NCBI RefSeq assembly: GCF_001447785.1
Contig: NW_015165353.1
Span: forward strand, 1 to 64,000
Direction: 5' to 3'
DNA: 64,000 bases
From: Gekko japonicus
Lineage: Eukaryota
A program made the position numbers and the translations under genes. A model generated the notes under the pieces. It was not told where the DNA came from. It made no database searches and was given only the letters and a program-made list of their open reading frames with translations. Shown here in pieces: positions 11,058-59,832 of the stretch (positions are counted from its first letter, which is position 1; each line of letters opens with the position of its first letter).

Positions 11058-13900
11058 ATGCTTAACAGGCAAGTCTGGTCTTTTTCTTTGTATTTCTGCC
11101 TTGCTATCGGGGTTTGTGAGTCTTTCCACTATTCAGTGCCTGAAGAAAAGAAAAGTGGATCTCTGGTTGCAAATGTGCTAAAGGATTTGAAAGTGGGTGT
11201 GAAGGAGCTGTCTGCTCGTAGGGCTCGGCTGGTTTCTGAAGGCACCAAGCAATATTTCCAGCTGGATCCTTACTCTGGGAATGTGATATTGCAGGACAGA
11301 ATAGATCGAGAGTCTCTGTGTGGTCAGAAGGATCCTTGTGTCTTATTCTCAGAGATTGTGCTGGAGAATCCATTGCAAGTGCACAGGATTGAAGTTCAGA
11401 TAGAGGACGTGAATGATAATTCCCCCCAATTCTCTAAAAAGGAATTCCTTTTTGAAATACCTGAGCAGACTCCCCTGAATACCCAGTTCCTTTTGGAGAA
11501 GGCTCAAGATCAGGACAACGGGGAAAATGCTGTTCAGAACTATACACTTAGTCCAAATGACCATTTTAGACTGGATGTACACAGTCGCAGTGATGGGATC
11601 AAATATGCAGAGTTAGTACTGGAGAAACAGCTGGACCGTGAAGAGATTGCACGGCTTTTCCTGATTCTGTCTGCTGTTGATGGAGGGACCCCAAAGAGAA
11701 CAGGCACAGCAAACATTATGGTTGAAGTTCTGGACAGCAACGATAATGTCCCTCAGTTTCATCCATCCCTTTATGAAGTGAAACTAACAGAAAACACTCC
11801 AAAAAACACACTTGTGACTAAAGTTCAAGCTACTGACCAGGATCTTGGTTCCTACGGAGACGTCACCTATTCCTTCAGCCAGGTGCCAGAAAATGTGCTC
11901 AAAGCATTCAATTTAAACCAACAGACCGGGGAACTGACTGTTGCTGGAACCGTTGATTATGAAGAGGAGAGAAGTTATGAGATCAACATCAAAGCCACGG
12001 ATGGAGGGGGGCTCTCTTCGTATTGCAAAGTCGTGGTGGAGGTTGAGGACCAGAAGAGATTGCACGGCTTTTCCTGATTCTGTCTGCTGTTGATGGAGGG
12101 ACCCCAAAGAGAACAGGCACAGCAAACATTATGGTTGAAGTTCTGGACAGCAACGATAATGTCCCTCAGTTTCATCCATCCCTTTATGAAGTGAAACTAA
12201 CAGAAAACACTCCAAAAAACACACTTGTGACTAAAGTTCAAGCTACTGACCAGGATCTTGGTTCCTACGGAGACGTCACCTATTCCTTCAGCCAGGTGCC
12301 AGAAAATGTGCTCAAAGCATTCAATTTAAACCAACAGACCGGGGAACTGACTGTTGCTGGAACCGTTGATTATGAAGAGGAGAGAAGTTATGAGATCAAC
12401 ATCAAAGCCACGGATGGAGGGGGGCTCTCTTCGTATTGCAAAGTCGTGGTGGAGGTTGAGGACCAGAATGACAATGCCCCAGAGGTGACCCTCACATCGC
12501 TCACGAGCCCCGTACCAGAAGATTCTCCCCCAGATACAGTGGTGGCCCTCTTTCGTGTCACAGATCGAGATTCGGGAGAAAATGGCAAAACTTCCTGCAC
12601 CACGGAGGCAAGCTTGCCCTTCATGATAAAAGTGTCCGTGAATAGCTATTACCAGCTGCTGACCCAGCAGTCCCTGGACAGAGAAAAAGCCTCAGAGTAC
12701 AACATCACCATCACAGCTACAGACAGGGGCTCACCCAGGCTCACTTCAACAAGAATAATTAACGTTCAGATCTCAGATGTCAATGACAATGCTCCGGTAT
12801 TTGAGAAGTCAACATATGAAATGCAGTTATGGGAAAATAACATTCCGGGACTGCTGATAGGGTTGGTCCAAGCCAGGGACCTGGACACAGAGCGGAATGC
12901 CAAAGTAATGTATTCACTTTTGCCTGGGAAGGTCAGCAATCAACCTGTGTCCTCTTATGTCTCCATCAACTCTGAAACTGGGAATCTGTATGCCATCCGA
13001 TCAGTGGACTATGAGCAGGTGAAAGATTTTCATGTGACTGTGAGAGCTCTGGACAGCGGTTCTCCTCCCCTAAGCTCCCAAGTTATGGTCAAAGTTGTTG
13101 TCATGGATGAAAATGACAATGCCCCATTCATCCTCTACCCTCTTCAGAATGGCACTTCCCCATCCAATGACCTGGTTCCCAGAGAGGCTGAGGCTGGTTA
13201 CCTGATCACCAAGGTGGTGGCAGTGGACAGAGATTCCGGTCAGAACTCGTGGCTTTCCTATGAGCTCCTGAAGGCCACGGAACCGGGTCTGTTCAGTGTT
13301 GGGGCCCAGAATGGAGAAGTGAAAACCATGAGACCAATTAATAAAAGAGACACTTTAAAACAGAAACTAATCATTGGAGTCAGAGACAATGGGCACCCTC
13401 CCCAGTCTACCTCTGCAACGCTAAGTGTTCTGCTAGTGGATGGCTTTTCTGACCCGTATATGAAAATGTTGGATATCCCAAAGGATGCAGTGGTAGAGGA
13501 GGAAGACCGTACCCTGACGATGTATCTGGTCATATGCTTGGCTACCATCTCACTCATATTTCTGATTTCCATGGTGGTGTTCGTTGCAATCAAGGTTCAA
13601 AAAAGGAGGAAGTTCATAGAGAGCTCTGCCCTGAATTTCCCAGTGGGACCGAATTTCCAGGAGAACTTTGGAGATGCTGGTGCTGGATCCCTTTCCCGGG
13701 CTTACAACTATGAGGTGTGCTTAGCTGGTGGGTCCCTGAACAGCGAGTTCAGGTTTCTCAGGCCTCTCTTTCCTGTGTTTTCTGTGGAGCCTGCACCAGA
13801 TCAAAGGGATTCAATGATTTCAGCTGGTTCCCAAGAAGTTCCCAGTCATGGAGCAGAAAGTGAACACATAAGTCAGGTGAGAGTAATTAAGTTAATATAA
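11058..13900 (+). CDS. PCDHB: Protocadherin-beta-type variable exon A1, frameshifted by a 413-bp exact internal duplication (possibly an assembly artefact)
   Basis: Signal peptide, six cadherin repeats (DRE, DxNDN, AxDGG), TM and the beta-type tail YEVCLAGGSLNSEFRFLRP. ORFs 10956-12077 and 12131-13900 overlap in content. Removing one copy gives 2430 nt (809 aa plus stop). Donor CAG|GTGAGA after 13876. Confidence 0.9.
11640..12465 (+). repeat. Exact tandem duplication, 413 bp x2 (11640-12052 / 12053-12465)
   Basis: GAAGAGATTGCACGGC...GAGGACCA repeated with period 413 and a 3-bp GAA junction microhomology. No differences seen by eye. Confidence 0.95.
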
Positions 13901-14795: not shown

Positions 14796-15413
14796 TTACA
14801 AAAATTATAATCTCTGTTAACAATGGTAACCGTGTTTAAAGTTCATATATACATGCAAAATTAGCATAAATATAAGCATATTATATATCAGGTAAATGTT
14901 TTGAGGCATGACTCAGACATGGGCGGAAACTGTTTTGCAAGTCAAGCATGACTTCAATAGGAGGAAGGAGAAATAAGATGAACTGGAACAGGAGGCTCCA
15001 GGCTGAACTCATCCCAGCAGAGTGAAAAGGAGAAATGAGGAAGGAGCGGCCTCACTTCTCCCCCCCCTCCTGTTTCGAGCGCTTTTAATTTGTTGTCATC
15101 CCTGGCCCTCAGTTGTAAGGAGACAAAATATAGGGCTTTAGTCTTAATTTCCCAGCAAGTGGCAGTGTGATCGGTTCCTTCGTTTGCCTTGCATAGAGTA
15201 CGACAGTAGGAGCCATTTGCTCATTGCTAATTTTAATTAATATTCTTGCATTGTATTTTTGTGTGTGGTGGTGGACATAATGTTGCATGGAGTAACTTTG
15301 CAAGTGGGTTCTGAAAGGCAGACTATATTTAGAGATGGATCCCAGTTCAAAAAGTTTGAAAGTCACTGTTTTAAAGGAAAATTTATGATTTGTATAGTTT
15401 TCTTATGGTCATA

Positions 15414-15429
15414 CCACAAGATGGCAGTA
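15414..15429 (+). promoter_or_regulatory. CSE / CTCF-type site of the B1 promoter
   Basis: CCACAAGATGGCAGTA, 229 bp upstream of ATG 15643. Conserved before all B exons. Confidence 0.75.
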
Positions 15430-15642
15430 TTGGCAAACAGATCAGATGCAGCATACATTTCAAAAAGAATCCTCGATTTTGAAGCAGGGCTAGCAGAAAC
15501 ATATCAGCAGTTAGAATCTGAAACAAGAGGAAGGGTGAGTGCTGGATGGATTTGGAAATAAAAGATTAAAAGAAAGAAAGCAATCAAAAGACCAGAACAA
15601 TTTCCTAAGAAATATAAATAATCACTGGATGATACTCAGAAC

Positions 15643-18069
15643 ATGGATGATAGCTTCAGGATCAGAAAAGGTCTGTACCTTTTGTTCTTATTCTTGGTGT
15701 CTAGAGTGGTGTGTGTCTCTATTCGCTATTCTTTGCCTGAAGAGAAGAAAAGTGGGTCTCTGGTGGCTAATGTGCTGAAGGATTTGAAACTGGGACCAGG
15801 GGAGCTCTCTGCTCGCAGAGCCCAGCTGGTTTCCAAAAGCAATAAGCAGTACTTCCAGCTGGATAGCCGTTCTGGGAATCTCTTTGTAAATGAAAAGATA
15901 GACAGAGAAGCTTTGTGTGGGAAGGTGGAGCCTTGCTTACTGTTGTCTGAAATTGTGCTCCAAAACCCCTTAACAATCTACATTATTGAGATTGAGATCA
16001 AAGATGTGAATGACAATTCACCTGAATTCTCCAAAAAGGAATTTGAATTAGCAATTCCTGAGAATGTTCCTACAAATACACGATTTCCTTTGGAATCTGC
16101 CCAAGACACAGACTTAGGTGAAAACACTATTCAGAACTACACACTCAGTGTCAATGGGAATTTCAGATTGGATGTACAAAGTAATGAGTTTGGGAGCAAA
16201 TATGTGGACCTTGTTCTGGAGAAATCACTAGACAGGGAGAAAGAAGCTCATTTGCGGCTGACTCTCACAGCTGTTGATGGAGGGGTGCCCCAGAGAACAG
16301 GCACAATTCAAATAAATATTAATATTCTGGACATCAATGACAACTTCCCGCAGTTTACACAATCTGAATATAAAGTGAAGCTAAAGGAAAACAGTCCTCG
16401 TGGTACTCTAGTGTCTAAAGTAGAAGCCAGAGATTTGGATTTTGGTTCAAATGCAGAGATCACGTACTCATTCCATCGGGTACCTGAGAATATAGAACAC
16501 TTGTTCTACTTGCAACAGAAAACTGGAGAAATCACAATTTTGGGTCCAATTGACTATGAAAAGGAAGCCAGCTATCACTTAGACATTAAAGCAACAGATG
16601 GAGGGGGCCTTTCAGGCCACTGCAAGGTCCTGGTGGAAATTGAGGATGAGAACGACAATCTACCTGAGATATCGGTCATATCCGTCACCAACCCTTTGGC
16701 AGAAGACTCTCCCCTAGATACTCTGGTCGTCCTCTTCAGTGTCACAGACCGAGACTCCGGAGACAATGGCAGGACCTTCTGCTCTGTGGAGATGAACTTG
16801 CCTTTCCTGTTAAAAAACACTGTGAATAATTATTATCAACTGGTGACCCAAAGGCCACTGGATAGAGAGAAAGTCCCTGAGTATAACATCACCATCACAG
16901 CTACTGATCGGGGCTCTCCCAAGCTGATTTCTGTTAGAATAATTAGCGTTGAGATCTCAGACATCAACGACAACTCTCCAGCGTTTGAGAAGTCCAAGTA
17001 TGAAATGCAAGTGTGGGAAAACAACATTCCTGGCCTGCTGATGGGTTTGGTCCGGGCTGCCGATCTGGACGTGGAGCAGAATGCCAAGGTGACCTATTAC
17101 CTTGTGCCTGGAAATGCCAGTGGTGCTCCTGCGGCCTCTTATGTTTCCATCAACTCTGAGACGGGGAATCTGTATGTCCTGCGATCTCTGGATTATGAGC
17201 AGATCAAGGAGTTCCAAGTGACAGTGAGGGCTTCAGATGGGGGCTCTCCTCCACTGAGCTCAGAGGTTGTTGTTCGAGTTGTGATCCTGGATGAAAACGA
17301 TAATGCGCCCTTCTTCCTCTACCCACTTCAGAACAGCACCTCCCCCTTCAACGAGCTGGTTCCCAAGTCAGCGGAGTCCGGTTACCTGGTTGCCAAGGTG
17401 GTGGCTGTGGATGGGGATTCGGGCCAGAACTCTTGGCTGTCCTATGAACTCCTGAAGGCCACAGACCCCGGCCTTTTCAGCATAGGAGCCCAGAACGGAG
17501 AAGTGAAAACCCGGAGACCACTGACGGAGCGAGATACCAACAAGCAGAGACTGATTATCCTGGTGAGAGACAACGGCCACCCTCCCCAGACCAGCACTGC
17601 AACCCTGAATGTCCTTCCGGTGGATGGCTTTTCAGATCCTTATCTGAATATTGCAAGCGTCAGTCACGAAGCCAGTGAGGAAGACGGCTCCTTGACCATG
17701 TACCTGGTGATCTGCTTGGCTGCGGTGTCCTTTGTGTTCCTGGTTTGCATCATTGTGTTTGTTGCCATCAAAGTGCACAAGAAAGAGTCTAGTTTCATCA
17801 CCGCCCTTCCTCAGTTCCCACCTGCCTTGCCTGAGATCCCAGAAACCGGTGTCGATTCTCAGAGTGGATCACTTTCCCGGACTTACCGCTATGACGTTTG
17901 CCTAACCGGTGGATCACTAAGCAGCGAGTTCAGATTCCTTAGGCCTCTCATTCCTGTTTTTTCTATGGGAGACCCAAACATTTCTGAGAATCACAGGATT
18001 TCTTCTATCTCTCAAGAGGCTCCTGAGCAAGCAGAAGGCCAAAAACAAAGAGAACAGGTATGTAAATAG
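15643..18069 (+). CDS. PCDHB: Protocadherin-beta-type variable exon B1 (intact, 808 aa if unspliced)
   Basis: Signal peptide, EC1-EC6, TM and YDVCLTGGSLSSEFRFLRP tail. Donor CAG|GTATGT after 18057. Confidence 0.95.
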   Translation: MDDSFRIRKGLYLLFLFLVSRVVCVSIRYSLPEEKKSGSLVANVLKDLKLGPGELSARRAQLVSKSNKQYFQLDSRSGNLFVNEKIDREALCGKVEPCLLLSEIVLQNPLTIYIIEIEIKDVNDNSPEFSKKEFELAIPENVPTNTRFPLESAQDTDLGENTIQNYTLSVNGNFRLDVQSNEFGSKYVDLVLEKSLDREKEAHLRLTLTAVDGGVPQRTGTIQININILDINDNFPQFTQSEYKVKLKENSPRGTLVSKVEARDLDFGSNAEITYSFHRVPENIEHLFYLQQKTGEITILGPIDYEKEASYHLDIKATDGGGLSGHCKVLVEIEDENDNLPEISVISVTNPLAEDSPLDTLVVLFSVTDRDSGDNGRTFCSVEMNLPFLLKNTVNNYYQLVTQRPLDREKVPEYNITITATDRGSPKLISVRIISVEISDINDNSPAFEKSKYEMQVWENNIPGLLMGLVRAADLDVEQNAKVTYYLVPGNASGAPAASYVSINSETGNLYVLRSLDYEQIKEFQVTVRASDGGSPPLSSEVVVRVVILDENDNAPFFLYPLQNSTSPFNELVPKSAESGYLVAKVVAVDGDSGQNSWLSYELLKATDPGLFSIGAQNGEVKTRRPLTERDTNKQRLIILVRDNGHPPQTSTATLNVLPVDGFSDPYLNIASVSHEASEEDGSLTMYLVICLAAVSFVFLVCIIVFVAIKVHKKESSFITALPQFPPALPEIPETGVDSQSGSLSRTYRYDVCLTGGSLSSEFRFLRPLIPVFSMGDPNISENHRISSISQEAPEQAEGQKQREQVCK

Positions 18070-24440: not shown

Positions 24441-24452
24441 TATAGTTCTCTG

Positions 24453-27466: not shown

Positions 27467-27482
27467 ACACAAGGTGGTGCAA
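27467..27482 (+). promoter_or_regulatory. CSE / CTCF-type site of the A2 promoter
   Basis: ACACAAGGTGGTGCAA, homologous to 10821 and 291 bp upstream of ATG 27758. Confidence 0.65.
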
Positions 27483-27757: not shown

Positions 27758-30181
27758 ATGGAAATGCATCGCAACAAAAGGCAAGGTTGGTCTTTTTTTC
27801 TGTATCTCTGCATGTGTGGGGGGATATGCGAATCCTTCCTGTATTTAGTGCCTGAGGAAAAGAAAAGTGGGTCTCTGGTGGCAAACCTGCTAGAGGATTT
27901 GAAAGTGGAGGATGTGAAGGAGCTGTCTGCTCGTGGGGCTCGGCTGGTTTCTAAAAGCAGCAAGCAATTTTTACAGCTGGATCCACACTCTGGGAATTTG
28001 TTATTAAAGGACAGAATAGACCGAGAAGGCTTTTGTGGTCAGAAGGACCCTTGCGTCTTGATTTCAGAGATTGTACTGGAAAATCCACTGCAAGTGCACA
28101 GAATTGAAGTCCAAATAGAGGATGTGAATGACAATTCCCCCCACTTCTCTAAAAAGGAGTTCCTTCTTGAAATACCCGAACAGACTCCCCTGAATACCCG
28201 ATTCCCGTTGGAGAGTGCTAAAGATGCAGATAGAGGAGAAAATGGTGTTCAGAACTATACCCTTAGTCCAAATGACCATTTTAGGTTGGGTGTTCAGAGT
28301 CACAGCGATGGTAGCAAAAGTGCAGAATTAGTACTAGAGAAACAATTAGACCGTGAAGAGAATGCACGGCTTTTCCTGATTCTGTCGGCTATTGACGGAG
28401 GGACCCCAAAGAGAACAGGCACAGCAAAAATTGTAATTGATGTTCTGGACAACAATGATAATGTCCCTCAGTTCCATCAATCTCTGTACAAAGTGAAGGT
28501 ACTGGAAAATGCCCCCCCAAACACACTTGTAGCTAAAGTGGAAGCAACGGACAGGGATCTTGGATCTAATGCAGACATCACCTATTCCTTCGGACAGGTG
28601 CCAGAAAATGTGCTCAGATCGTTCAAGTTAAACAAACATACTGGGGAACTTATTGTTGCAGGAACCATTGATTATGAAGAAGACAAAAGTTATGCCATGA
28701 ACATCAAAGCCACAGATGGAGGGGGCCTGTCTGCTTACTGCAAAGTCGTTGTGGAGGTGCAGGACACCAATGACAATGCCCCAGAGGTGACCGTAACCTC
28801 CATCACCAGCCCCTTTCCAGAAGATTCACCTCCAGATACTGTTGCAGCCCTCTTCAGTGTCACCGATCAGGACTCTGGAGATAATGGCAGAACTTCCTGC
28901 ATCATTGAGACAAACTTGCCCTTCATTTTAAAAACCTCAGAGAATAACTATTACCAGCTGGTGATCCAGCAACCCCTCGACCGAGAAGGAGTCTCAGAGT
29001 ACAACATCACCATCACAGCTACGGACTGGGGGTCTCCCCGGCTCACTTCAACAAAAATAATTAATGTTCAGATCTCAGATGTCAATGACAACTCCCCAGT
29101 ATTTGAGATGTCATATTACGAACTGCCAATAGTAGAAAATAATATTCCAGGTCTTCTAATGGGATTAGTGCATGCCGATGACCTGGACACTGAGCAGAAC
29201 GCCAAAATTACCTATTCACTTTTGCCTGGGAAGGTCAGTGATCAACCTGTGTCCTCTTACGTCTCCATCAACTCTGAAACTGGGAATCTGTATTCCATCC
29301 GATCTCTGGACTATGAACAGGTGAAAGATTTCCAAGTAACTGTGAGGGCTGTGGACAGCGGTTCTCCTCCCCTGAGCTCCCAAGTTATGGTCCGAGTCAT
29401 TGTCATGGATGAAAATGATAATGCTCCGTTCATCCTCTACCCTCTTCAGAATGGCACTTCCCCATCCAATGACCTGGTTCCTAGGGGGGCGGAGGCTGGC
29501 TACCTGGTCACCAAGGTGGTGGCAGTGGACAGAGATTCCGGTCAGAACTCCTGGCTTACCTATGAGCTCCTGAAGGCTACAGAACCGGGTCTGTTCAGTG
29601 TGGGGGCCCAGAATGGAGAAGTGAAAACCATGAGACCAATTCATAAACGAGACACCTTCAAACAGAAACTGATCATTGGAGTCAGAGATAATGGTCACCC
29701 TCCCCAGTCCACCTCTGCAACACTAAGCATTCTGTTAGTGGATGGCTTTTCTGACCCTTATATGAAAATGTTGGATATCCCAAAGGAAGAAATGATGGAG
29801 AAAGAAGACCGTACCCTGACGATGTATCTGGTCATATGTTTGGCTGTCATCTCCTTCATTTTTCTGGTTTCTATGTTGGTGTTTGTGGCCATCAAGATTC
29901 AGAAAAGGAGAAAGTTCGTAGAGAGCTCCACCCTGAATTTCCCAGTGGTACCAAATTTCCCAGAGAACAGTGGAGATGTTGATGCTGGATCCCTTTCCCG
30001 GGCTTACAACTATGAGGTGTGCTTAGCTGGTGGTTCTCTGAACAGCGAGTTCAGGTTTCTCAGGCCTCTCTTTCCTGTGTTTTCTGTGGAGCCTGCTCAA
30101 AACCAGGGAGATTCAAGGATTTCTGGTCACCATGCAGAAGATCAGGTCAGTAGTCAGGTAAGAAGAATTGATTTACCATAA
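27758..30181 (+). CDS. PCDHB: Protocadherin-beta-type variable exon A2 (intact, 807 aa if unspliced)
   Basis: Signal peptide, EC1-EC6, TM and beta-type tail. Donor CAG|GTAAGA after 30157. Confidence 0.95.
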   Translation: MEMHRNKRQGWSFFLYLCMCGGICESFLYLVPEEKKSGSLVANLLEDLKVEDVKELSARGARLVSKSSKQFLQLDPHSGNLLLKDRIDREGFCGQKDPCVLISEIVLENPLQVHRIEVQIEDVNDNSPHFSKKEFLLEIPEQTPLNTRFPLESAKDADRGENGVQNYTLSPNDHFRLGVQSHSDGSKSAELVLEKQLDREENARLFLILSAIDGGTPKRTGTAKIVIDVLDNNDNVPQFHQSLYKVKVLENAPPNTLVAKVEATDRDLGSNADITYSFGQVPENVLRSFKLNKHTGELIVAGTIDYEEDKSYAMNIKATDGGGLSAYCKVVVEVQDTNDNAPEVTVTSITSPFPEDSPPDTVAALFSVTDQDSGDNGRTSCIIETNLPFILKTSENNYYQLVIQQPLDREGVSEYNITITATDWGSPRLTSTKIINVQISDVNDNSPVFEMSYYELPIVENNIPGLLMGLVHADDLDTEQNAKITYSLLPGKVSDQPVSSYVSINSETGNLYSIRSLDYEQVKDFQVTVRAVDSGSPPLSSQVMVRVIVMDENDNAPFILYPLQNGTSPSNDLVPRGAEAGYLVTKVVAVDRDSGQNSWLTYELLKATEPGLFSVGAQNGEVKTMRPIHKRDTFKQKLIIGVRDNGHPPQSTSATLSILLVDGFSDPYMKMLDIPKEEMMEKEDRTLTMYLVICLAVISFIFLVSMLVFVAIKIQKRRKFVESSTLNFPVVPNFPENSGDVDAGSLSRAYNYEVCLAGGSLNSEFRFLRPLFPVFSVEPAQNQGDSRISGHHAEDQVSSQVRRIDLP

Positions 30182-31957: not shown

Positions 31958-31973
31958 CCACAAGATGGCAGTA
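31958..31973 (+). promoter_or_regulatory. CSE / CTCF-type site of the B2 promoter
   Basis: CCACAAGATGGCAGTA, 259 bp upstream of ATG 32217. Confidence 0.75.
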
Positions 31974-39373: not shown

Positions 39374-39420
39374 TAGTCAAGCTTCCCCCCAAAGTTTGAG
39401 TTCTGGTCTTTCTAGTAGGT

Positions 39421-39436
39421 CCACAAGAGAGCAGTA
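39421..39436 (+). promoter_or_regulatory. Mutated CSE of an orphan B-type promoter
   Basis: CCACAAGAGAGCAGTA followed by TTGGCAAACAGAT, then the BovB element instead of a coding exon. Confidence 0.65.
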
Positions 39437-39459
39437 TTGGCAAACAGATCAGTTGCAAC

Positions 39460-42400: not shown

Positions 42401-42557
42401 GACTGTTCCCTGGAAGGCCAGATAATGAAACTGAAGCTCAAATACTTTGGCCACCAAATGAGAAGGGAGCACTCACTGGAGAAGACCCTGATGCTGGGAA
42501 AGATTGAAGGTCAAAGAAGACGGGGACGGCAAAGGATGAGATGGTTAGACAGTGTCA
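39460..42557 (+). mobile_element. Near-full-length RTE-BovB LINE, truncated at its 3' end
   Basis: 5' UTR CATGGATCACTGCCTTG..., uninterrupted ORF. Homology to the other BovB copies stops at GACAGTGTCA (42557), before the normal C-terminus and tail. Confidence 0.95.
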
Positions 42558-42592: not shown

Positions 42593-42712
42593 TAGCAGGA
42601 AAAGACTTTGCACGTGGATTCTAAAAGGCAGAGTAAGAAAGCAGTCAATCTGCTCCAAAAAGTTTGAGAACTTAAAGAGACATGCAAGTTTCATGGTTTT
42701 CTTCTAGTAAGA

Positions 42713-42728
42713 CCACAAGATGGCAGTA
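42713..42728 (+). promoter_or_regulatory. CSE / CTCF-type site of the B3 promoter
   Basis: CCACAAGATGGCAGTA, 269 bp upstream of ATG 42982. Confidence 0.75.
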
Positions 42729-42981
42729 TTAGCAAACAGATGGGCTGCAAATGGCATTTCTGGCATTTCATTTGTAGCACTAGCAAAAACCTAACAGGCA
42801 GAGACACTCTGAATGCAGAGGGAAGGGAGCTGCTGGATAGATGGGAAGACTCGAGGACAAAAAGGAATGGACACAGCAGATCAAAATTAATTATTCCAGG
42901 AAAAGAAGATATCTCTGGATAGTACCCAGCTGCTTCATGTTCTGAAAACCATAAATATCTGACCTGGGAGAGTCTGGCACC

Positions 42982-45184
42982 ATGGAGGATCATTTCAGAA
43001 TCAGAAGAGGTCTGTACCTTTTGTTCTTACTCTCTCTGTCTGGAGTGGTGTGTGTCTCTATTCACTATTGTGCTCCAGAACCCCTTAACAATCTACAGCA
43101 TTGAGATGCAGGTAGAAGATATAAATGACAACTCTCCAGCATTCTCCCAAACTGAACTTAACCTATCTATTCCTGAGAATGCTCCCACAAACACTCGATT
43201 CCCCCTGGAATCTGCCCAAGATACTGATTTGGGCAAAAACACCATCCAGAACTACACCCTCAGTCCCAATGAAAATTTTCACTTGGAAATTCAAAGTGGC
43301 AGGAGTGGAAGGAAACATTTGGAACTTGTTCTGGAGAAACCACTAGACAGGGAGAAAGCGGCTCAGTTGGGGCTGACACTCACAGCTGTTGATGGAGGGG
43401 TGCCCCAGAGAACAGGCACAGTTCAAATCAATATTAATGTTCTGGACACCAATGACAACTTCCCTGAGTTTGCACAATCTGAATACATAGTGAGTTTGAA
43501 GGAAAACAGCCCTCGAGATACTCTGGTCTTGAAAGTGGAAGCCAGAGATTTGGATTTGGGTTCAAATGCAGAGATCACATATTCATTCCATCAGGCGCCT
43601 GAGAAAATAAGCCAATTGTTCCAGTTGCATCAAACTACAGGGGAAATCACTGTTTTGGGTCCAATTGACTATGAAAAAGAAACCAGGTATTATATGAACA
43701 TCAAAGCAACAGATGGAGGGGGCTTCTCAGGCCACTGCAAGGTCCTGGTGGAAATTGAGGATGAGAATGACAATGCCCCAGAAATATCAGTCATAACCAT
43801 CACCAGCCCTTTGGCAGAAGATTCTCCCCTAGATACATTGGTTGTGCTTTTCAGTGTCACAGACCGAGACTCTAGAGACAACGGGAGGACCTCATGCTCT
43901 GTAGGGATACAGTCCCCTTTTCTTTTAAAAACAACACTGAACAATTATTATCAACTTGTGACCCAAAGTCCACTAGACAGAGAGAAAGTCTCTGAGTATA
44001 ACGTCACCATCACAGCTACTGATAAGGGCTCTCCCAAGCTCACTACAGAAAGAACCATTACAGTTTTAATTTCAGACATCAATGACAACTCTCCAGTGTT
44101 TGAGAAGTCCAAGTATGAAATGCAAGTGTGGGAAAACAACATTCCCGGCCTGCTGATGGGTTCGGTCCGTGCTGTCGATCTGGACGTGGAGCAGAATGCC
44201 AAGGTGACCTATTCTCTTGTGCCAGAAAATGCCAGTGGTGCTTCTGCAGCCTCTTATGTTTCCATCAACTCTGAGACGGGGAATCTGTACGTCCTGCGAT
44301 CTCTGGATTATGAGCAGATCAAGGAGTTCCAAGTGAGAGTGAGGGCTTCAGATGGGGGTTCTCCTCCACTGAGCTCAGAGGTTGTTGTTCGAGTTGTGAT
44401 CCTGGATGAAAACGACAATGCCCCCTTCTTCCTCTACCCACTTCAGAACAGCACCTCCCCCTTCAACGAGCTGGTTCCCAAGTCAGTGGAGGCCGGTTAC
44501 CTGGTCGCCAAGGTGGTGGCTGTAGATGGGGATTCGGGCCAGAACTCTTGGCTTTCCTATGAACTGCTGAAGGCCACAGACCCCGGCCTTTTCAGCATAG
44601 GAGCCCAGAACGGAGAAGTCAAAACCAGGAGGCCACTGACAGAGCGAGACACAAACAAGCAGAGACTGATTATCCTGGTGAGAGACAATGGCCACCCTCC
44701 CCAGACCAGCACTGCAACCCTGAATATCCTTCCGGTGGATGGCTTTTCAGATCCTTATCTGAATGTTGCAAGCGTCAGTCATGAAGCTGGTGAGGAAGAC
44801 GGCTCCTTGACCATGTACCTGGTGATCTGCTTGGCTGCGGTGTCCTTTGTGTTCCTGATTTGCATCATTGTGTTTGTTGCCATCAAAGTTCACAAGAAAG
44901 AGTCTAGTTTTATCACCGCCCTTCCTCAGTTCCCACCTGCCTTACCTGAGATCCCTGAAACTGGTGTCGATTCTCAGAGTGGATCACTTTCCCGGACCTA
45001 CCATTATGATGTTTGCCTTACTGGTGGATCCTTAAGCAGCGATTTCAGATACCTTAGGCCTCTCATTCCTGTTTTTTCTGTGGGGGACCCAAATGTCTCT
45101 GAGAATCACAGGATTTCGTCTATCTCTCAAGAGACTTCTGAGCAGGTGGAGGGCCAAAAAGAAAGAGAACAGGTATGTAAATAG
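42982..45184 (+). pseudogene. PCDHB: Protocadherin-beta-type exon B3 with a 224-bp frameshifting deletion of most of EC1
   Basis: At 43066-43070 TATT joins GTGCTCCAGAA, so the equivalent of 52310-52533 is missing (ATT microhomology). The signal-peptide frame stops at 43102-43104. EC2 to tail is still open. Donor CAG|GTATGT after 45172. Confidence 0.9.
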
Positions 45185-48376: not shown

Positions 48377-48377
48377 G

Positions 48378-49640
<1,263 letters not shown>

Positions 49641-50937: not shown

Positions 50938-51952
50938 ATTCTCTCTCCCCACCTTTGGGCAGTTCTGAAGTATAAGGAGGGAAGGGAATGGCTTGCAAGT
51001 CAGACCTATGACACAGTTGTGTATGCAAGCTTTCAAGTTCTCCAGCTTTATTAACTGGGATGTTTTTAAAAAAACTGAGCTTGTGGAGAAGGCTGAGGGG
51101 TTGTTGGACCATTCTGTCCCTGACAGGCGGCCTGCAGTTCAGGGAGACTCCCTGTCATTCAGTGACAGCTGTTTCAAGATGGGGACCACTTGGCTGCCAA
51201 ATAACACCACTGGGCAGTAGCCTTGCCCGCTTTCCTGAAATATATGGTGGGTGCCACATTGGGAAATGGTATTCAGAAGTTCAAGTGGCATGTCAAAGAG
51301 TGACGCATGGCTCAGTACCACTGATTTAAACAAAATGCAGATTGGCTTACTGTTTATGCAGTGGCTTTTAAACTGTGGGTTGGGGCTATATCGTCTGCCA
51401 GAAGGGAGGCGGAGGGAAAAGGTGAACTAGAAGAGGAGACTGTAAAAGTGGGTGGAATTTCCTGTCTTTCCTCGGCTTCCCACTCAGTGGGGATGCACTC
51501 TGCCCTGTGTTCCTTTGTCTTTCCAGCAGAAGTTTGTTTTGTCAACCAAGGCAGTAGGAGCCACTTCATACGTTGCGTTTTAGATGTACTAATAGTTTGG
51601 TGTGTGTAAATAAGAACATTGAACACATTGATCAAGTGGGTGTGATTGGCTGCAGTTCTGTTCCAGTTAGTGTGTATTTTATATGCATAAAGTGAAAAAT
51701 GGCTGAGAGATCTTTATGCAAAGCATTGCTCACTATTGCTATTTATTAATAAACCTTAAAAATAAAACATTAAGTTGTTCAATAGTAACTTAGATTAGAG
51801 TCTTCCATTTTGTGTGCATACGGGAGGGGGAGTAGCCGGGAACGACTTTGCACGTGGATTCTAAAAGGCAAAGTAAGATAACAGTCAATTTGCTCCCAAA
51901 AAGTTGAGAACTTAAATAGACATACAATTTTCATGGTTTTCTTCTGGTAGGA

Positions 51953-51968
51953 CCACAAGATGGCAGTA
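51953..51968 (+). promoter_or_regulatory. CSE / CTCF-type site of the B4 promoter
   Basis: CCACAAGATGGCAGTA, 269 bp upstream of ATG 52222. Confidence 0.75.
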
Positions 51969-52221
51969 TTAGCAAACAGATGAGTTGCAAATGGCATTTC
52001 AGGCATTTCATTTGTAGAACTAGCAGAAACCTAACAGGCAGAGACATTGTGAATGCAGAGGGAAGGAAGGTGCTGGATACACAGAAAGATTCAAAAGCGA
52101 AAAGCAATGGACACAGCAGATCAAAATTAATCATTCCAGAAGGATAAAATATCTCTGGATAGTACCCAGCTTCTTCATGTTCTGAAAACCATAAATTTCT
52201 GACCTGGGAGAGTCTGGCACC

Positions 52222-54678
52222 ATGGACGATATCTTCAGGATGAGAAAAGGTCTGTACCTTTTGTTCTTACTCTCTCTGTCTGGAGTGGTGTGTGTCTCTA
52301 TTCGCTATTCTTTGCCTGAAGAGAAGAAAAGTGGGTCTCTGGTGGCTAATGTGCTGAAGGATTTGAAGCTGGGACCAGGGGAGCTCTCTGCTCGCAGAGC
52401 CCAGCTAGTTTCCAAAAGCCATAAGCAATATTTCCAGCTGGATACCCATTCTGGGAATCTGTTTGTAAATGAAAAGATAGACAGAGAAGCTTTGTGTGGT
52501 GAGATGGATTCTTGCTTACTTTTGTCTGAAATTGTGCTCCAGAACCCCTTAACAATCTACAGCATTGAGATGCAGATAGAAGATATAAATGACAACTCTC
52601 CAGCATTCTCTCAAACTGAACTTGACCTGTCTATTCCTGAGAATGCTCCCACAAATAGTCGATTCCCACTGGAACCAGCCCAAGATAGAGACTTGGGCAA
52701 AAACAGTATTCAGAACTACACCCTAAGTCCCAATGAGAATTTTCAGCTGGAAATACAAAGTGGCAGGGATGGAAATAAAAATCTGGACCTTGTTCTGGAA
52801 AAACCACTAGACAGGGAGAAGGAGGCTCATTTGTTGCTGACTCTCACAGCAGTTGATGGAGGGTCGCCCCAGAGAACGGGCACAGTTCAAATAAATATTA
52901 AGGTTCTGGACATTAATGACAACTTCCCTCAGTTTGCACAATCTGAATATATAGTGAGTTTAAAGGAAAATAGCCCTCCAGATACTCTGGTCTTGAAAGT
53001 GGAAGCAAGAGATTTAGATTTTGGTTCAAATGCAGAGGTCACTTACTCATTCCATCAGGTGCCTGAGAGAATAAGCAACTTGTTCCAGTTGCATCAAATG
53101 ACTGGGGAAATCACCGTTTTAGGTCCAATTGACTATGAAAAAGAAACCAAATATTATATGAAGATCAAGGCAACGGACGGAGGTGGTCATACAGGCCATT
53201 GTAAGGTCCTGGTGGAAATCGAGGATGAGAATGACAATGTACCTGAGATCTCAGTCATATCTGTCACCAGCCCTTTGGCAGAAGACTCTCCTTTAGATAC
53301 CATGGTCATCCTCTTAAGTGTCACAGACCGAGACTCTGGAGAAAATGGTAAGACTTCCTGCTCCATGGAGATGAACTTGCCCTTTCTATTAAAAAACACT
53401 GTGAATAATTATTATCAACTGGTGACCCAAACGCCGCTGGACAGAGAGAAAGTCCCTGAGTATAACATCACCATCACAGCGACTGATCAAGGTTTTCCCA
53501 GGCTCACTACAAAGAGAACAATTACAGTTTTAATCTCAGATGTCAATGACAACTCTCCAGCATTTGAGAAGTACAAGTATGAAATGCAAGTGTGGGAAAA
53601 CAACATTCCAGGCCTGCTGATGGGTTCAGTCCGTGCTGTCGATCTGGACGTGGAGCAGAATGCCAAGGTGACCTACTCTCTTGTGCCTGGAAATGCCAGT
53701 GGTGCTCCTGCAGCCTCTTTTGTTTCCATCAACTCTGAGACGGGGAATCTCTTTGTCCTGCGGTCTCTGGATTATGAGCAGATCAAGGAATTCCAAGTGA
53801 TGGTGAGGGCTTCAGATGGGGGCTCTCCTCCACTGAGCTCAGAGGTTGTTGTTCGAGTTGTGATCCTGGATGAAAACGATAATGCCCCCTTCTTCCTCTA
53901 CCCACTTCAGAACAGCACCTCCCCCTACAACGAGCTGGTTCCCAAGATGGTGGAGGCCGGTTACCTGGTCGCCAAGGTGGTGGCTGTGGATGGGGATTCA
54001 GGCCAGAACTCTTGGCTTTCCTATGAACTGCTGAAGGCTACAGATCCCGGCCTTTTCAGCATAGGAGTCCAGAATGGAGAAGTCAAAACCAAAAGACCAC
54101 TGACGGAGCGAGATGCAAACAAGCAGAGACTGATTATCCTGGTGAGAGACAACGGCCACCCTCCCCAGTCCAGCACTGCAACCCTGAATGTACTTCCGGT
54201 GGATGGCTTTTCCGATCCTTATCTGAATATTGCAAGTGTCAGTCATGAAGTCGTTGAAGAAGATGGCTCCTTGACCATGTACCTGGTGATCTGCTTGGCT
54301 GCGGTGTCCTTTGTGTTCCTGATTTGCATCATTGTGTTTGTTGCCATTAAAATGTACAAGAAAGACTCTAGTTTTATCACCGCCCTTCCTCAGTTCCCAC
54401 CTGCCTTACCTGAGATCCCAGAAACTGGTGTCGATTCTCAGAGTGGATCACTTTCCCGGACTTACCATTATGATGTTTGCCTAACCGGTGGATCACTAAG
54501 CAGCGATTTCAGATTCCTTAGGCCTCTCATTCCTGTTTTCTCTATGGGGGACCCAAATATCTCTGAGAATCACAGGATTTCTTCTGTCTCTCAAGAGACT
54601 CATCAGCAGGCAGAAGGCCAAGAACAAAGAGAACAGGTGAGTAAGTTGTTGTGTTTTCTTTATTGCCCCATGTTCTAG
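52222..54678 (+). CDS. PCDHB: Protocadherin-beta-type variable exon B4 (intact, 818 aa if unspliced)
   Basis: Complete signal peptide, EC1-EC6, TM and tail. Donor CAG|GTGAGT after 54636. Confidence 0.95.
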   Translation: MDDIFRMRKGLYLLFLLSLSGVVCVSIRYSLPEEKKSGSLVANVLKDLKLGPGELSARRAQLVSKSHKQYFQLDTHSGNLFVNEKIDREALCGEMDSCLLLSEIVLQNPLTIYSIEMQIEDINDNSPAFSQTELDLSIPENAPTNSRFPLEPAQDRDLGKNSIQNYTLSPNENFQLEIQSGRDGNKNLDLVLEKPLDREKEAHLLLTLTAVDGGSPQRTGTVQINIKVLDINDNFPQFAQSEYIVSLKENSPPDTLVLKVEARDLDFGSNAEVTYSFHQVPERISNLFQLHQMTGEITVLGPIDYEKETKYYMKIKATDGGGHTGHCKVLVEIEDENDNVPEISVISVTSPLAEDSPLDTMVILLSVTDRDSGENGKTSCSMEMNLPFLLKNTVNNYYQLVTQTPLDREKVPEYNITITATDQGFPRLTTKRTITVLISDVNDNSPAFEKYKYEMQVWENNIPGLLMGSVRAVDLDVEQNAKVTYSLVPGNASGAPAASFVSINSETGNLFVLRSLDYEQIKEFQVMVRASDGGSPPLSSEVVVRVVILDENDNAPFFLYPLQNSTSPYNELVPKMVEAGYLVAKVVAVDGDSGQNSWLSYELLKATDPGLFSIGVQNGEVKTKRPLTERDANKQRLIILVRDNGHPPQSSTATLNVLPVDGFSDPYLNIASVSHEVVEEDGSLTMYLVICLAAVSFVFLICIIVFVAIKMYKKDSSFITALPQFPPALPEIPETGVDSQSGSLSRTYHYDVCLTGGSLSSDFRFLRPLIPVFSMGDPNISENHRISSVSQETHQQAEGQEQREQVSKLLCFLYCPMF

Positions 54679-56708: not shown

Positions 56709-57123
56709 ATTTTTAGATGTACTAATAGTCTGGTGTGTGTAAACAAGAGCATTGAACACATTGATCAAGAGGGTGTGATTGGCTGCAGTTGCATTCAAGT
56801 AGGTGTGTATTCTATATGCATAAAGTGCAAAATGGCTGAGAGATCTTTATGCACATCATTTATCACAATTGCTATGCATTTGTTGTTGTTCAGTCGCACA
56901 GTCGAGTCCGACTCTTTGCGACCCCATAAACATTAACTTGTTCAATAATAACTTAGATGAGAATCTTATATTTGTGCGCATAGGGGAGGGGGAGTAGCGG
57001 GGAATGACTTTGCAGACAGATTCTAAAAGGCAGAGTAAGATAGCAGTCAAGCTTCCCCCCAAAAAAGTTTGAGATCTGGTCCTATACTAGACATGCAACT
57101 TCCATGGTTTTCTCCTAATAGGA

Positions 57124-57139
57124 CCACAAGAGGGCAGTA
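57124..57139 (+). promoter_or_regulatory. CSE / CTCF-type site of the B5 promoter
   Basis: CCACAAGAGGGCAGTA, 264 bp upstream of ATG 57388. Confidence 0.75.
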
Positions 57140-57387
57140 TTGGCAAACAGATGAGTTGCAAATGGCATTTCTGGCATTTCATTTGTAGCAGTGCGAACAG
57201 GAACCTAACAGGCAGAGACACTCTGAATGCAGAGGGAAGGAAGCTGATGGGAAGATTCAAGGACAAAAAGCAATGGACACAGCAGATCAAAATTAATTAT
57301 TCCAGGAAAAGAAGATATCTCTGGATAGTACCCAGCTGCTTCATGTTTTGAAAACTATAAATATCTGACCTGCGAGAGTCTGGCACC

Positions 57388-59832
57388 ATGGACCATAGCT
57401 TCAGGATCATGAAAGGTCTGTACCTTTTTTTCTTACTCTCTCTGTCTGGAGTGGTGTGTGTCTCAATTCGCTATTCTTTGCCTGAGGAGAAGAAAAGTGG
57501 GTCTCTGGTGGCTAATGTGCTGAAGGATTTGAAGCTGGGACTGGGGGAGCTCTCTGCTCGCAGAGCCCAGCTGGTTTCCAAAAGCAAGAAGCAGTATTTC
57601 CAGCTGGATGATCATTCTGGGAATCTATTTGTAAATGAAAAGATAGACAGGGAAGCTTTATGTGATGAGATGGAGCCTTGCTTACTATTGTCTGAAATTG
57701 TGCTCCAGAACCCCTTAACAATCTACAGCATTGAGATGCAGGTAGAAGATATAAATGACAACTCTCCAGCATTCTCTCAAACTGAACTTGACCTGTCCAT
57801 TCCTGAGAATGTTCCCACAAACACTCGATTCCCATTGGAATCTGCCCAAGATATAGACATGGGCAAAAACAGTATTCAGAATTACACCCTTAGTCCCAAT
57901 GAAAATTTTCACTTGGAAATTCACAGTGGCAGGAGTGGAAAGAAGCATTTGGAACTTGTTCTGGAGAAACCACTAGACAGGGAGAAAGAGGCTCAGTTGG
58001 GGCTGACCCTCACAGCAGTTGATGGAGGGGTGCCCCAGAGAACGGGAACAGTTCTAATAAAGGTCAGTGTTCTGGACAGTAATGACAACTTCCCTGAGTT
58101 TGCACAATCTGAATATACAGTAGGTTTAAAGGAAAACAGCCCTCGGGATACTCTGGTCTTGAAAGTGGAAGCCAGAGATTTAGATTTTGGTTCAAATGCA
58201 GAAATAACCTACTCCTTCCATCAGGTGCCTGAGAAAATAAGGCATTTATTCCACTTGCATCAAACTACTGGGGAAATCACTGTTTTGGGTCCAATTGACT
58301 ATGAAAAGGTAACCAGCTATTATTTGAACATCAAGGCAACTGATGGAGGGGGTCGTTCAGGCCACTGCAAAGTCCTGGTGGAAATTGAGGATGAGAATGA
58401 CAATGCCCCTGAGATATCGGTCATAACCATCATCAGCCCTTTGGCAGAAGATTCTCCCCTAGATACTCTGGTCGTGCTCTTCAGTGTCGCAGACCAAGAT
58501 TCTGGAGACAATGGGAGGACCTCCTGCTCTGTAGGGATACAGTCACCATTTCTGTTAAAAAAGACACTGAACAATTATTATCAACTTGTGACACAAAGTC
58601 CACTAGACAGAGAGAAAGTTTCTGAGTATAACATCACCATCACAGCGACTGACCAGGGCTCTCCAAGGCTCATTACAAAAAGAACAATTATGGTTTTAAT
58701 CTCAGACGTCAATGACAACTCTCCAGAGTTTGAGAAGTCCAAGTATGAAATGCAAGTTTGGGAAAACAACATTCCAGGCCTGCTGATGGGTTCGGTCCAT
58801 GCTGTCGATCTGGACGTGGAGCAGAATGCCAAGGTGACCTATTCTCTTGTGCCTGGAAATGCCAGTGGTTCTCCCGTGGCCCCCTATGTTTCCATCAACT
58901 CTGAGACGGGGAACCTCTATGTCCTGCGATCTCTGGATTATGAGCAGATCAAGGAGTTCCAAGTGAGAGTGAGGGCTTCAGATGGGGGCTCTCCTCCACT
59001 GAGCTCGGAAGTTGTTGTTCGAGTTGTGATCCTGGATGAAAACGATAATACCCCCTTTTTCCTCTACCCACTTCAGAACAGCACCTCCCCCTTCAACGAG
59101 CTGGTTCCCAAGTCAGCGGAGGCCGGTTACCTGGTCGCCAAGGTGGTGGCTGTGGATGGGGATTCGGGCCAGAACTCTTGGCTGTCCTATGAACTGCTGA
59201 AGGCCACGGACCCCGGCCTTGTCAGCATAGGAGCCCAGAACGGAGAAGTTAAAACCAGGAGACCACTGACAGAGCGAGACACAAACAAGCAGAGACTGAT
59301 TATCCTGGTGAGAGACAACGGCCACCCTCCCCAGACCAGCACTGCAACACTGAATGTCCTTCCTGTGGATGGCTTTTCAGATCCTTATCTGAATATTGCA
59401 AGCGTCAGTCACGAAGCCGGTGAAGAAGATGGCTCCTTGACCATGTACCTGGTGATCTGCTTGGCTGCGGTGTCCTTTGTGTTCCTGATTTGCATCATTG
59501 TGTTTGTTGTCATCAAAATGCACAAGAAAGAGTCTAGTTTTATCTCTGCCCTTCCTCAGTTCCCACGTGCCTTACCTGAGATCCCAGAAACTGGTATTGA
59601 TTCTCAGAATGGATCACTTTCCCGGACTTACCACTATGATGTTTGCCTAACTGGTGGATCACTAAGCAGCGAGTTCAGATTCCTTAGGCCTCTCATTCCT
59701 GTTTTTTCTGTGGGGGACCCAAATATCTCTGAGAATCACAGGATTTCTTCTGTCTCTCAAGAGACTCCTGGGCACGTGGAGGGCCAAAACCCAAAGGAAC
59801 AGGTAAGTAAATACCTGGGGGGGTTTTCTTAA
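57388..59832 (+). CDS. PCDHB: Protocadherin-beta-type variable exon B5 (intact, 814 aa if unspliced)
   Basis: Complete signal peptide, EC1-EC6, TM and tail. Donor CAG|GTAAGT after 59802. Confidence 0.95.
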   Translation: MDHSFRIMKGLYLFFLLSLSGVVCVSIRYSLPEEKKSGSLVANVLKDLKLGLGELSARRAQLVSKSKKQYFQLDDHSGNLFVNEKIDREALCDEMEPCLLLSEIVLQNPLTIYSIEMQVEDINDNSPAFSQTELDLSIPENVPTNTRFPLESAQDIDMGKNSIQNYTLSPNENFHLEIHSGRSGKKHLELVLEKPLDREKEAQLGLTLTAVDGGVPQRTGTVLIKVSVLDSNDNFPEFAQSEYTVGLKENSPRDTLVLKVEARDLDFGSNAEITYSFHQVPEKIRHLFHLHQTTGEITVLGPIDYEKVTSYYLNIKATDGGGRSGHCKVLVEIEDENDNAPEISVITIISPLAEDSPLDTLVVLFSVADQDSGDNGRTSCSVGIQSPFLLKKTLNNYYQLVTQSPLDREKVSEYNITITATDQGSPRLITKRTIMVLISDVNDNSPEFEKSKYEMQVWENNIPGLLMGSVHAVDLDVEQNAKVTYSLVPGNASGSPVAPYVSINSETGNLYVLRSLDYEQIKEFQVRVRASDGGSPPLSSEVVVRVVILDENDNTPFFLYPLQNSTSPFNELVPKSAEAGYLVAKVVAVDGDSGQNSWLSYELLKATDPGLVSIGAQNGEVKTRRPLTERDTNKQRLIILVRDNGHPPQTSTATLNVLPVDGFSDPYLNIASVSHEAGEEDGSLTMYLVICLAAVSFVFLICIIVFVVIKMHKKESSFISALPQFPRALPEIPETGIDSQNGSLSRTYHYDVCLTGGSLSSEFRFLRPLIPVFSVGDPNISENHRISSVSQETPGHVEGQNPKEQVSKYLGGFS

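Follow-up and report, generated by a model that had tools for sequence, protein, structure and literature searches.

The window, that is the whole 64-kb stretch of Gekko japonicus DNA analysed here, is part of a fragmented scaffold 124-kb long. It contains eight protocadherin-beta (Pcdh-beta) exons in tandem, all on the + strand:

11058-13876, + strand: V1, Pcdh-beta variable exon, subfamily B; broken by a tandem duplication; donor CAG/GTGAGA after 13876
15643-18057, + strand: V2, Pcdh-beta variable exon, subfamily A; intact, 805 codons; donor CAG/GTATGT after 18057; P0006 is 100% identical
27758-30157, + strand: V3, Pcdh-beta variable exon, subfamily B; intact, 800 codons; donor CAG/GTAAGA after 30157
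32205-34831, + strand: V4, Pcdh-beta variable exon, subfamily A; reading frame shifted near 33135-33146, and interrupted by assembly gap 34061-34513; donor CAG/GTGAGT after 34831
42947-45172, + strand: V5, Pcdh-beta variable exon, subfamily A; ~66 N-terminal codons missing, signal peptide among them; donor CAG/GTATGT after 45172
48378-49640, + strand: V6, Pcdh-beta exon fragment, subfamily B pseudogene; residues ~397-800 in several frames; donor CAG/GTGAGA after 49640
52222-54636, + strand: V7, Pcdh-beta variable exon, subfamily A; intact, 805 codons; donor CAG/GTGAGT after 54636
57388-59802, + strand: V8, Pcdh-beta variable exon, subfamily A; intact, 805 codons; donor CAG/GTAAGT after 59802

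The open reading frames of 800-805 codons each correspond to one large exon of ~2.4 kb, and Pfam assigned Cadherin_2, six Cadherin domains and Cadherin_C_2 to the 88%-identical model P0013. The two subfamilies share ~63% amino-acid identity and are strongly divergent just upstream of the donor. Only V2, V3, V7 and V8 are intact in the G. japonicus assembly; the other four (V1, V4, V5 and V6) are damaged. In V1 an internal tandem duplication has left two copies (11640-11939 and 12053-12352) that are 100% identical at a spacing of 413 nt. In V4 the left flank of the gap aligns with V2 residues 310-618 and the right flank with residues 700-805, order and orientation being kept. The run of N spans 453 nt, whereas the paralogues have ~81 codons (243 nt) at this place. 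Thus the length of the N run is not real, and its divisibility by three is uninformative on the continuity of the frame. Only the 106 local codons determine the phase of the V4 donor, which is found 318 nt beyond the right end of the gap.

Among named proteins, the closest are the curated beta genes of Anolis carolinensis (TPA entries P0059, P0061, P0072, P0073 and others), which are direct relatives of the window exons at 70-73% identity. The best PDB matches for EC1-4 were mouse beta8 (421 and 434 bits) and beta6 (415 and 423 bits); among these constructs of equal length, gammaA1 (395 and 388), gammaB7 (392 and 381), gammaC4 and alpha4 scored lower. Judged by this ranking together with the published anole tree, the window exons are beta-type, the identity they had been given in the sequence-only reading.

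A search for representative homologues yielded mainly giant cadherins and fused, nameless multi-exon models, and a gamma-like constant motif was seen in only one of them. A cluster look-up returned entries from lungfish, coelacanth, shark and turtle, none of which was labelled alpha or gamma.

Seven of the eight exons are preceded by a conserved promoter-type element with a CTCF-like core, for which 0 matches were expected by chance:

15413-15434, + strand: promoter-type conserved element with the CTCF-like core CCACAAGATGGCAG, ~230 nt upstream of the V2 ATG
10822-10833: equivalent copy, V1
27468-27479: equivalent copy, V3
31957-31978: equivalent copy, V4
42712-42733: equivalent copy, V5
51952-51973: equivalent copy, V7
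57123-57144: equivalent copy, V8
39420-39441: degraded copy

At the other end of each exon, the last position listed above is the G of a CAG codon in the window letters, with GT directly next to it (8 of 8). The donor 9-mers of V1 to V8 are, in this order, CAGGTGAGA, CAGGTATGT, CAGGTAAGA, CAGGTGAGT, CAGGTATGT, CAGGTGAGA, CAGGTGAGT and CAGGTAAGT, and each fits the consensus MAG/GTRAGT at eight or nine of nine positions. The motif CAGGTR(A/T)G occurs ten times on the + strand of the window, and eight of these sites are the exon ends. All eight donors are in phase 0, the open reading frames or aligned frames up to the donor consisting of whole codons. The counts are 805 for 15643-18057, 800 for 27758-30157, and 805 each for 52222-54636 and 57388-59802; in the damaged exons they are 582 for 12131-13876, 707 for 43052-45172 and 106 for 34514-34831, and the frame-3 alignment of V6 (48585-49640) has 352 codons to the donor. 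Reading through the donor would add 7, 3, 7, 3, 3, 7, 13 and 9 residues in V1 to V8, respectively. The sequence-only reading is thereby upheld in two points: all beta-type exons of both subfamilies end in a phase-0 CAG/GT donor after Gln, and the read-through tails are short and variable (3-13 residues).

The donor has been kept in both subfamilies despite the diverged coding sequence just upstream of it. The eight sites belong to paralogues and hence do not represent eight independent events; independent support for the donors is found in other species. There, 29 single-exon models from many species end in Q-V-(R/S/K/C/N) followed by a stop, which is the donor consensus translated. In one turtle model the homologous place reads ERE-VS, a hint that a donor may be present there as well. 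The donors look functional.

Orthologous exons were found in Heteronotia, Euleptes and Paroedura, with 85-88% identity for V2, V7 and V8 and 81-87% for V3 and V1. The donor Gln is the last aligned residue, after which the subject sequence runs into a terminal tail of 39 residues that ends in GQNDWLSYQ and a stop codon. The evidence for this tail consists of computed gene models from squamates. It was present in 91 retrieved models, in 19 distinct versions, and these come from at least 13 genera, all of them squamate and none of them Gekko: Heteronotia, Euleptes, Paroedura, Eublepharis, Sphaerodactylus, Anolis, Sceloporus, Pogona, Podarcis, Rhineura, Elgaria, Hemicordylus and Tiliqua. Within a species one tail is joined to many variable exons (X1-X17 in Heteronotia, up to X19 in Paroedura, X1-X10 in Euleptes and X1-X10 in Anolis carolinensis). 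Two UniProt entries that are not named as RefSeq, P0068 (Podarcis) and P0089 (Anolis), have the same tail. Single-exon read-through models were also present in every species among the retrieved models. The tail searches restricted to particular regions were word-limited and missed species known to have the tail, and are uninformative on turtles, birds, crocodilians and tuatara.

The tail contains an acidic SEDAA motif, a Pro/Gly-rich stretch and the C-terminal GQNDWLSYQ. Between Gekkota and other squamates it is 65% identical, compared with 55% for the 39 residues at the end of the variable exon and 72% for the whole exon. Insertions and deletions in the tail are in frame only: Eublepharis has one extra codon and Rhineura lacks three. 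All versions close with YQ and a stop. Pfam gave no match for the 39 residues and no Cadherin_tail on a tail-bearing isoform, and a gamma- or alpha-type constant region was found in none of the 168 retrieved beta-type models. By these sequence comparisons the tail is beta-specific and is not the gamma constant region. The proposal that beta exons splice to a downstream constant domain, either that of gamma or a beta-specific one, is therefore borne out in part by the models of other squamates: a beta-specific tail is joined at the homologous Gln, and the gamma target appears in none of the 91 tail-bearing models. The idea of a shared signalling domain of some size is not supported, as the shared part is one terminal peptide of 39 residues. 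The gamma constant region was also considered as a splice target in its own right and was rejected in view of the 91 tail-bearing models and the Pfam results.

The origin of the tail appears to lie in the variable exons themselves, which contain an internal sequence resembling a 3' splice site within the coding region of EC6:

17320-17331, + strand: internal 3'-splice-site-like sequence in EC6 of V2, a pyrimidine run plus CAG, encoding FFLYPLQ
13147, 29449, 33895, 44446, 53910 and 59076: ends of the same EC6 sequence in other exons

In V6 the internal YPLQ site has decayed to CAA. An ungapped alignment places the squamate tail on the 39 codons after YPLQ in the variable exons. When 16 tails were compared with four exons, the best ungapped window of 39 residues lay exactly after YPLQ for all 16. 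The alignment has a z of 10.2 versus shuffles, and the first 29 residues alone give a p of about 8e-4. An HMM of the tail matched EC6 with an E of about 5e-5 per sequence, and tblastn gave E = 2e-6. On these alignments, the tail is homologous to EC6. The tail aligns with EC6 directly after YPLQ, where the DNA resembles a 3' splice site; this suggests that the constant exon is what remains of a dead variable exon after exonisation.

For G. japonicus itself, tblastn with seven tails against the window yielded only the EC6 segments of variable exons and chance matches. The window does not contain the constant exon, in agreement with the sequence-only reading, which placed the constant exons outside it. 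Among the matches, models of G. japonicus and G. kuhli all lacked the tail. The RefSeq models of G. japonicus either read through the donor or run from it to a small local exon (P0028 to 57189-57293, P0035 to 60635-60652); P0028, P0035 and P0033 pair the donors at 54636, 59802, 34831 and 45172 with local acceptors. The snake and skink models P0010, P0119 and P0081 run from a donor into the interior of a downstream variable exon.

The interpretation that we consider likely is that the window is part of the G. japonicus protocadherin-beta array and that its donors are spliced to one beta-specific terminal constant exon derived from EC6. Each ~2.4-kb variable exon has its own promoter element and encodes six cadherin repeats, a membrane span and a short cytoplasmic stretch, and it would end in a working 5' splice site. 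Transcription would start at one chosen variable exon and continue through the downstream ones; splicing would then connect the donor of the chosen exon with one terminal constant exon, specific to beta, that lies outside the window past the downstream end of the array and would supply 39 residues and the stop codon. By this, all beta isoforms would share a C-terminal peptide and a 3' end. The constant exon itself would be an old relic of a beta variable exon, reaching in EC6 from the position after YPLQ to WLSY(E/Q) and closed by a new stop. We infer that the same constant exon exists and is used in G. japonicus. The squamate models presumably reflect real mRNAs, and the tail presumably has a function.

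Alternatively, the donors could be relics or rarely used. Gecko beta mRNAs would then be single-exon, extend 3-13 codons past the Gln and be polyadenylated locally, and the tail seen elsewhere would be a minor or artefactual isoform. AATAAA or ATTAAA hexamers are present 180-1200 nt downstream of most donors in the window, so that local polyadenylation is possible, and the single-exon read-through models in every species point in the same direction. Mouse Pcdh-beta transcripts are unspliced by 3' RACE, and mammalian beta transcripts are polyadenylated locally. Jiang et al. 2009 (PMC2764143) placed the anole beta subcluster in beta phylogenetically and described it without constant exons; however, the RT-PCR in that study confirmed splicing only for delta, alpha and gamma, not for beta. 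Relic donors would also have to be reconciled with a strong donor at all eight exons, in two diverged subfamilies and in many squamate genera. Moreover, the tail is more conserved than the adjacent variable sequence, with indels in frame only and a fixed stop, and it is common to many isoforms per species. We therefore regard this alternative as unlikely.

The G. japonicus models with local acceptors (P0028, P0035, P0033) and the snake and skink models that enter the interior of a downstream variable exon (P0010, P0119, P0081) suggest another alternative, namely that the Gekko donors mostly join nearby cryptic acceptors. Candidates are mini-exons in the leader of the next exon or the in-frame internal EC6 acceptor of downstream variable exons, and the resulting ends would be heterogeneous and probably non-functional. 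Yet the true constant exon may be absent from the fragmented 124-kb scaffold, in which case predicted local completions are to be expected, and the shared tail is seen in each of five other gecko genera, for which better assemblies exist. This makes cryptic acceptors as the main splice partners quite improbable. Splicing of the beta donors mainly to gamma (or alpha) constant exons, which would give beta ectodomains a gamma cytoplasmic domain, would match the architecture of the neighbouring clusters and is compatible with phase 0, but with all 91 spliced models ending in the short beta-specific tail, no gamma- or alpha-type region among the 168 beta-type models and no Cadherin_tail in Pfam, it is hardly credible.

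The likely arrangement, a beta array with one terminal constant exon of its own, combines properties of known protocadherin clusters. As in mammalian Pcdh-beta, a single ~2.4-kb exon encodes a signal peptide, six cadherin repeats, a membrane span and a Cadherin_C_2 stretch, such exons lie in tandem on the same strand with a promoter element each, and mouse beta8 and beta6 are the best EC1-4 relatives. Mammalian Pcdh-beta is unspliced, whereas each gecko exon has a phase-0 consensus donor and the models of its orthologues in other squamates have a terminal exon in common, to which they are spliced. Hence lizard beta-protocadherins are probably not single-exon genes as described from mammals. 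With Pcdh-alpha and Pcdh-gamma the array has in common that variable first exons carry their own promoter and a 5' splice site of fixed phase, and, going by the models of other squamates, that one constant end would serve many of them. The alpha and gamma clusters have three constant exons encoding a Cadherin_tail cytoplasmic domain of roughly 125-150 residues. The squamate beta tail, in contrast, is a single stretch: its 39 residues correspond in order to one uninterrupted EC6 segment, which codes for extracellular sequence and from which the tail appears to derive.

In exonisation, a new coding exon arises from a decayed pseudogene or repeat copy that already contains a 3' splice site and an open frame. 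What differs here from the general case is that the material would come from a sister variable exon of the same array, and that the new exon would serve as the constant end for the whole array. With somewhat less assurance than for the gecko array itself, we favour the broader view that squamate beta-protocadherins are not single-exon and that the whole array shares a dedicated constant exon of 39 codons. This exon would have been born before the squamate radiation by EC6 exonisation of a dead variable exon via the YPLQ site, and would have been under protein-level constraint since then.

The missing constant region is the defining trait of the beta cluster and the basis for the view that beta isoforms have no common cytoplasmic output. 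In the protocadherin literature searched, no paper was found to describe a beta constant exon in non-mammals. Later anole models differ from the description in PMC2764143: P0074, whose variable part equals P0059, and P0069, which corresponds in this way to P0073, continue from the same Gln into the tail. If lizards and geckos share a C-terminal beta peptide, the single-exon state is not general for amniotes, and the single-exon annotations of squamate beta genes, the published anole set included, would need revision. The tail would then be a minimal natural constant end with which roles of shared ends, such as trafficking, partner binding or a shared 3' UTR, could be tested. Its derivation from a fragment of a variable exon would be a documented case of a constant region arising within an array of variable exons and would offer a concrete model for the origin of the variable/constant gene architecture.

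The window derives from a Gekko japonicus scaffold of 124,475 nt. When it was searched over its whole length by tblastn with two intact ORFs as queries, eight protocadherin variable exons were found, all on the + strand and belonging to two subfamilies with approximately 63% amino-acid identity to each other. The 808-residue ORF at 15643-18069 matched, at 100% identity, a protein listed for the same contig, and the neighbours of this protein are G. japonicus models named 'protocadherin beta-16-like'.

Variable exons (V1-V8) and their upstream promoter-type elements with a CTCF-like core
~11058-13876, + strand: V1, subfamily B, frame broken by a perfect tandem duplication (spacing 413 nt); element at 10822-10833, + strand
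15643-18057, + strand: V2, subfamily A, intact; element at 15413-15434, + strand
27758-30157, + strand: V3, subfamily B, intact; element at 27468-27479, + strand
32205-34831, + strand: V4, subfamily A, frameshift near 33135-33146 and N gap; element at 31957-31978, + strand
42947-45172, + strand: V5, subfamily A, without about 66 N-terminal codons; element at 42712-42733, + strand
48378-49640, + strand: V6, subfamily B, fragment, pseudogene
52222-54636, + strand: V7, subfamily A, intact; element at 51952-51973, + strand
57388-59802, + strand: V8, subfamily A, intact; element at 57123-57144, + strand

The direct repeat in V1 (11640-11939 and 12053-12352) doubles about 137 codons; without it V1 would read as a single ORF. 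The 100% identity of the two copies points to an artefact of the assembly or to duplication in the very recent past. The frameshift in V4 sits in a stretch encoding DYEKET.., where the paralogues stay open. The N run inside V4 (34061-34513) is flanked on the left by sequence resembling V2 residues 310-618 and on the right by sequence resembling residues 700-805, with order and strand preserved. It comprises 453 positions, whereas in the paralogues about 81 codons (243 nt) separate the same points, an excess of about 210 nt. Thus the gap length is an estimate only, and its divisibility by three is no evidence of frame continuity. An intact non-LTR retrotransposon ORF (39641-42592, + strand, 983 residues, with an endonuclease/exonuclease/phosphatase domain and a reverse transcriptase) has a degraded promoter-type element (39420-39441) on one side and the V5 element on the other; related fragments occur near 8.3 kb and 37.9 kb.

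Against solved structures, compared as EC1-4 constructs of like length, V2 scored highest with mouse beta8 and beta6 (421 and 415 bits), as did V3 (434 and 423 bits). The best gamma or alpha constructs reached 371-395 bits, below beta8 and beta6 for both subfamilies. The nearest named non-gecko proteins, with 70-73% identity, were Anolis carolinensis entries of the anole cluster paper (Jiang et al. 2009, PMC2764143), in which phylogeny put them in beta, the 15 genes directly downstream of alpha. The score ranking and the published anole tree support the assignment of the window exons to the beta type. The conserved upstream element, with the core CCACAAGATGGCAG or CACAAGGTGGTG, precedes the ATG by about 230-290 nt; no copy was found ahead of the V6 fragment. 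These elements are consistent with separately promoted variable exons.

The sequence-only reading had described beta-type exons ending in a phase-0 CAG/GT donor, and this was borne out: at all eight positions a CAG codon ends and GT comes directly after it, and the 9-mers agree with the vertebrate consensus MAG/GTRAGT at 8-9 of 9 positions. Over the whole window, the + strand has CAGGTR[AT]G at only 10 sites, 8 of which are variable exon ends. By ORF arithmetic all donors are in phase 0, that of V4 (34831) being judged solely on the 106 codons that follow the gap, which was left unfilled. The read-through peptides comprise 3-13 residues. The donor is kept in both subfamilies despite strongly different coding sequence just upstream, the eight donors belonging to paralogues and not being independent samples. 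At the sequence level conservation of the donor itself extends across squamates, because 29 single-exon models from many species end in Q-V-[R/S/K/C/N] directly before the stop, which is the donor consensus in translation.

Many squamate homologue models, named 'isoform X1...X19', have about 843-846 residues as compared with about 807. In these longer models different variable exons end at the homologous Gln and continue into one common end of 39 residues. This tail is species-specific but conserved (acidic SEDAA, a Pro/Gly-rich stretch, GQNDWLSYQ, stop) and was present in 91 retrieved models, in 19 versions. Region-restricted searches found tail isoforms in Heteronotia (X1-X17), Paroedura (up to X19), Euleptes (X1-X10) and Anolis carolinensis (X1-X10), and the tail in A. 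sagrei, Elgaria, Hemicordylus and Sceloporus; retrieved models of Pogona, Podarcis, Rhineura, Tiliqua, Eublepharis and Sphaerodactylus carry it as well. Window exons of both subfamilies shared 81-88% identity with isoforms from other geckos that carry the tail, and the alignments stop precisely at the donor Gln. The anole variable exons published as single-exon (for example entries P0059 and P0073) are those joined to the tail in later models (P0074 and P0069).

It had been proposed that the donors wire the beta exons to a downstream constant region, either gamma or beta-specific. The tail shared by other squamates' models speaks for the beta-specific form. The gamma form was not supported: Pfam found neither a domain on the tail nor a Cadherin_tail, thus a gamma or alpha constant region was ruled out as its identity.

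In the 64-kb window tblastn with the tails found no constant exon, and no Gekko model among the retrieved matches bears the tail. The G. japonicus RefSeq models join the donors to small local exons instead. Model P0028 joins the V7 donor (54636) to 57189-57293, inside the V8 leader between promoter element and ATG, P0035 joins the V8 donor (59802) to 60635-60652, and P0033 chains V4, V5 and V6. The mini-exon at 57189-57293 has look-alikes upstream of V2, V4, V5 and V7, and both terminal mini-exons are preceded by pyrimidine-rich AG sites. Possibly, these local joins are those of a predictor closing an open model on a 124-kb scaffold. From the computed gene models of other species and from sequence conservation we infer that the donors use the tail, and we consider it quite probable that beta donors are spliced to a beta-specific constant exon.

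The anole (PMC2764143) and Xenopus cluster papers and the mouse beta paper describe beta without constant exons, the absence being confirmed in mouse by 3' RACE; in the anole study splicing was checked by RT-PCR for delta, alpha and gamma only. No description of squamate or reptile beta constant exons was found in the literature searched. Public annotation already displays the arrangement, but it has apparently gone without a description.

The gecko lineage separated from the other squamates roughly 200 million years ago. Between the two, the tail has a mean identity of 65% (range 51-74%), compared with 55% for the 39 residues at the end of the variable exon and 72% for the whole exon. The tail varies in length by whole codons only (+1 in Eublepharis, -3 in Rhineura), and YQ-stop closes every version. 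This pattern is what purifying selection on the peptide would predict, not a relic drifting for so long. In a turtle beta-like model (P0116, Chelonoidis abingdonii) ...ESERE-VS... stands at the spot homologous to the squamate donor, and its EC6 has WLSYQ, as in the squamate tail; its C-terminal part hints at a donor that may be older than the squamates.

When the tails were compared with the window by tblastn, the EC6 part of every variable exon was matched, up to E = 2e-6. Without gap or shift, each of the 39 residues that follow YPLQ pairs with one residue of the tail, and SGQN.WLSY has the same offset in both. When 16 distinct tails were aligned to four exons, the best ungapped window was in all 16 exactly the segment after YPLQ. 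Compared with shuffles, the score was higher by 10.2 standard deviations; with the strong core left out, the first 29 residues gave p of about 8e-4 at fixed offset, and a tail HMM hit EC6 with E of about 5e-5 per sequence. In seven of the eight exons the DNA at YPLQ has the form of a textbook 3' splice site, a pyrimidine run closed by CAG; in the V6 pseudogene the CAG has decayed to CAA. Tails are 51-100% alike among themselves and only 15-36% alike to EC6, which is consistent with a single origin.

The last base of CAG in these acceptor-like sites is at 13147 (V1), 17331 (V2), 29449 (V3), 33895 (V4), 44446 (V5), 53910 (V7) and 59076 (V8). Like the donors, the sites are in phase 0; thus splicing of an upstream donor to one of them would preserve the reading frame and append some 242 codons, a cassette reaching from EC6 to the cytoplasmic part. 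In the models P0010 (Crotalus horridus), P0119 (Erythrolamprus) and P0081 (Tiliqua) a donor is connected with internal sequence of a variable exon farther downstream.

The proposed derivation of the tail from EC6 is put forward here for the first time. The simplest reading of the sequence comparisons is that the tail is an exonised EC6 piece of a dead variable exon. An old beta variable exon would have died and its internal EC6 site been taken up as an acceptor; a stop would then have arisen after WLSYQ, and the 117-nt piece would have become the constant exon of the array before the squamate radiation.
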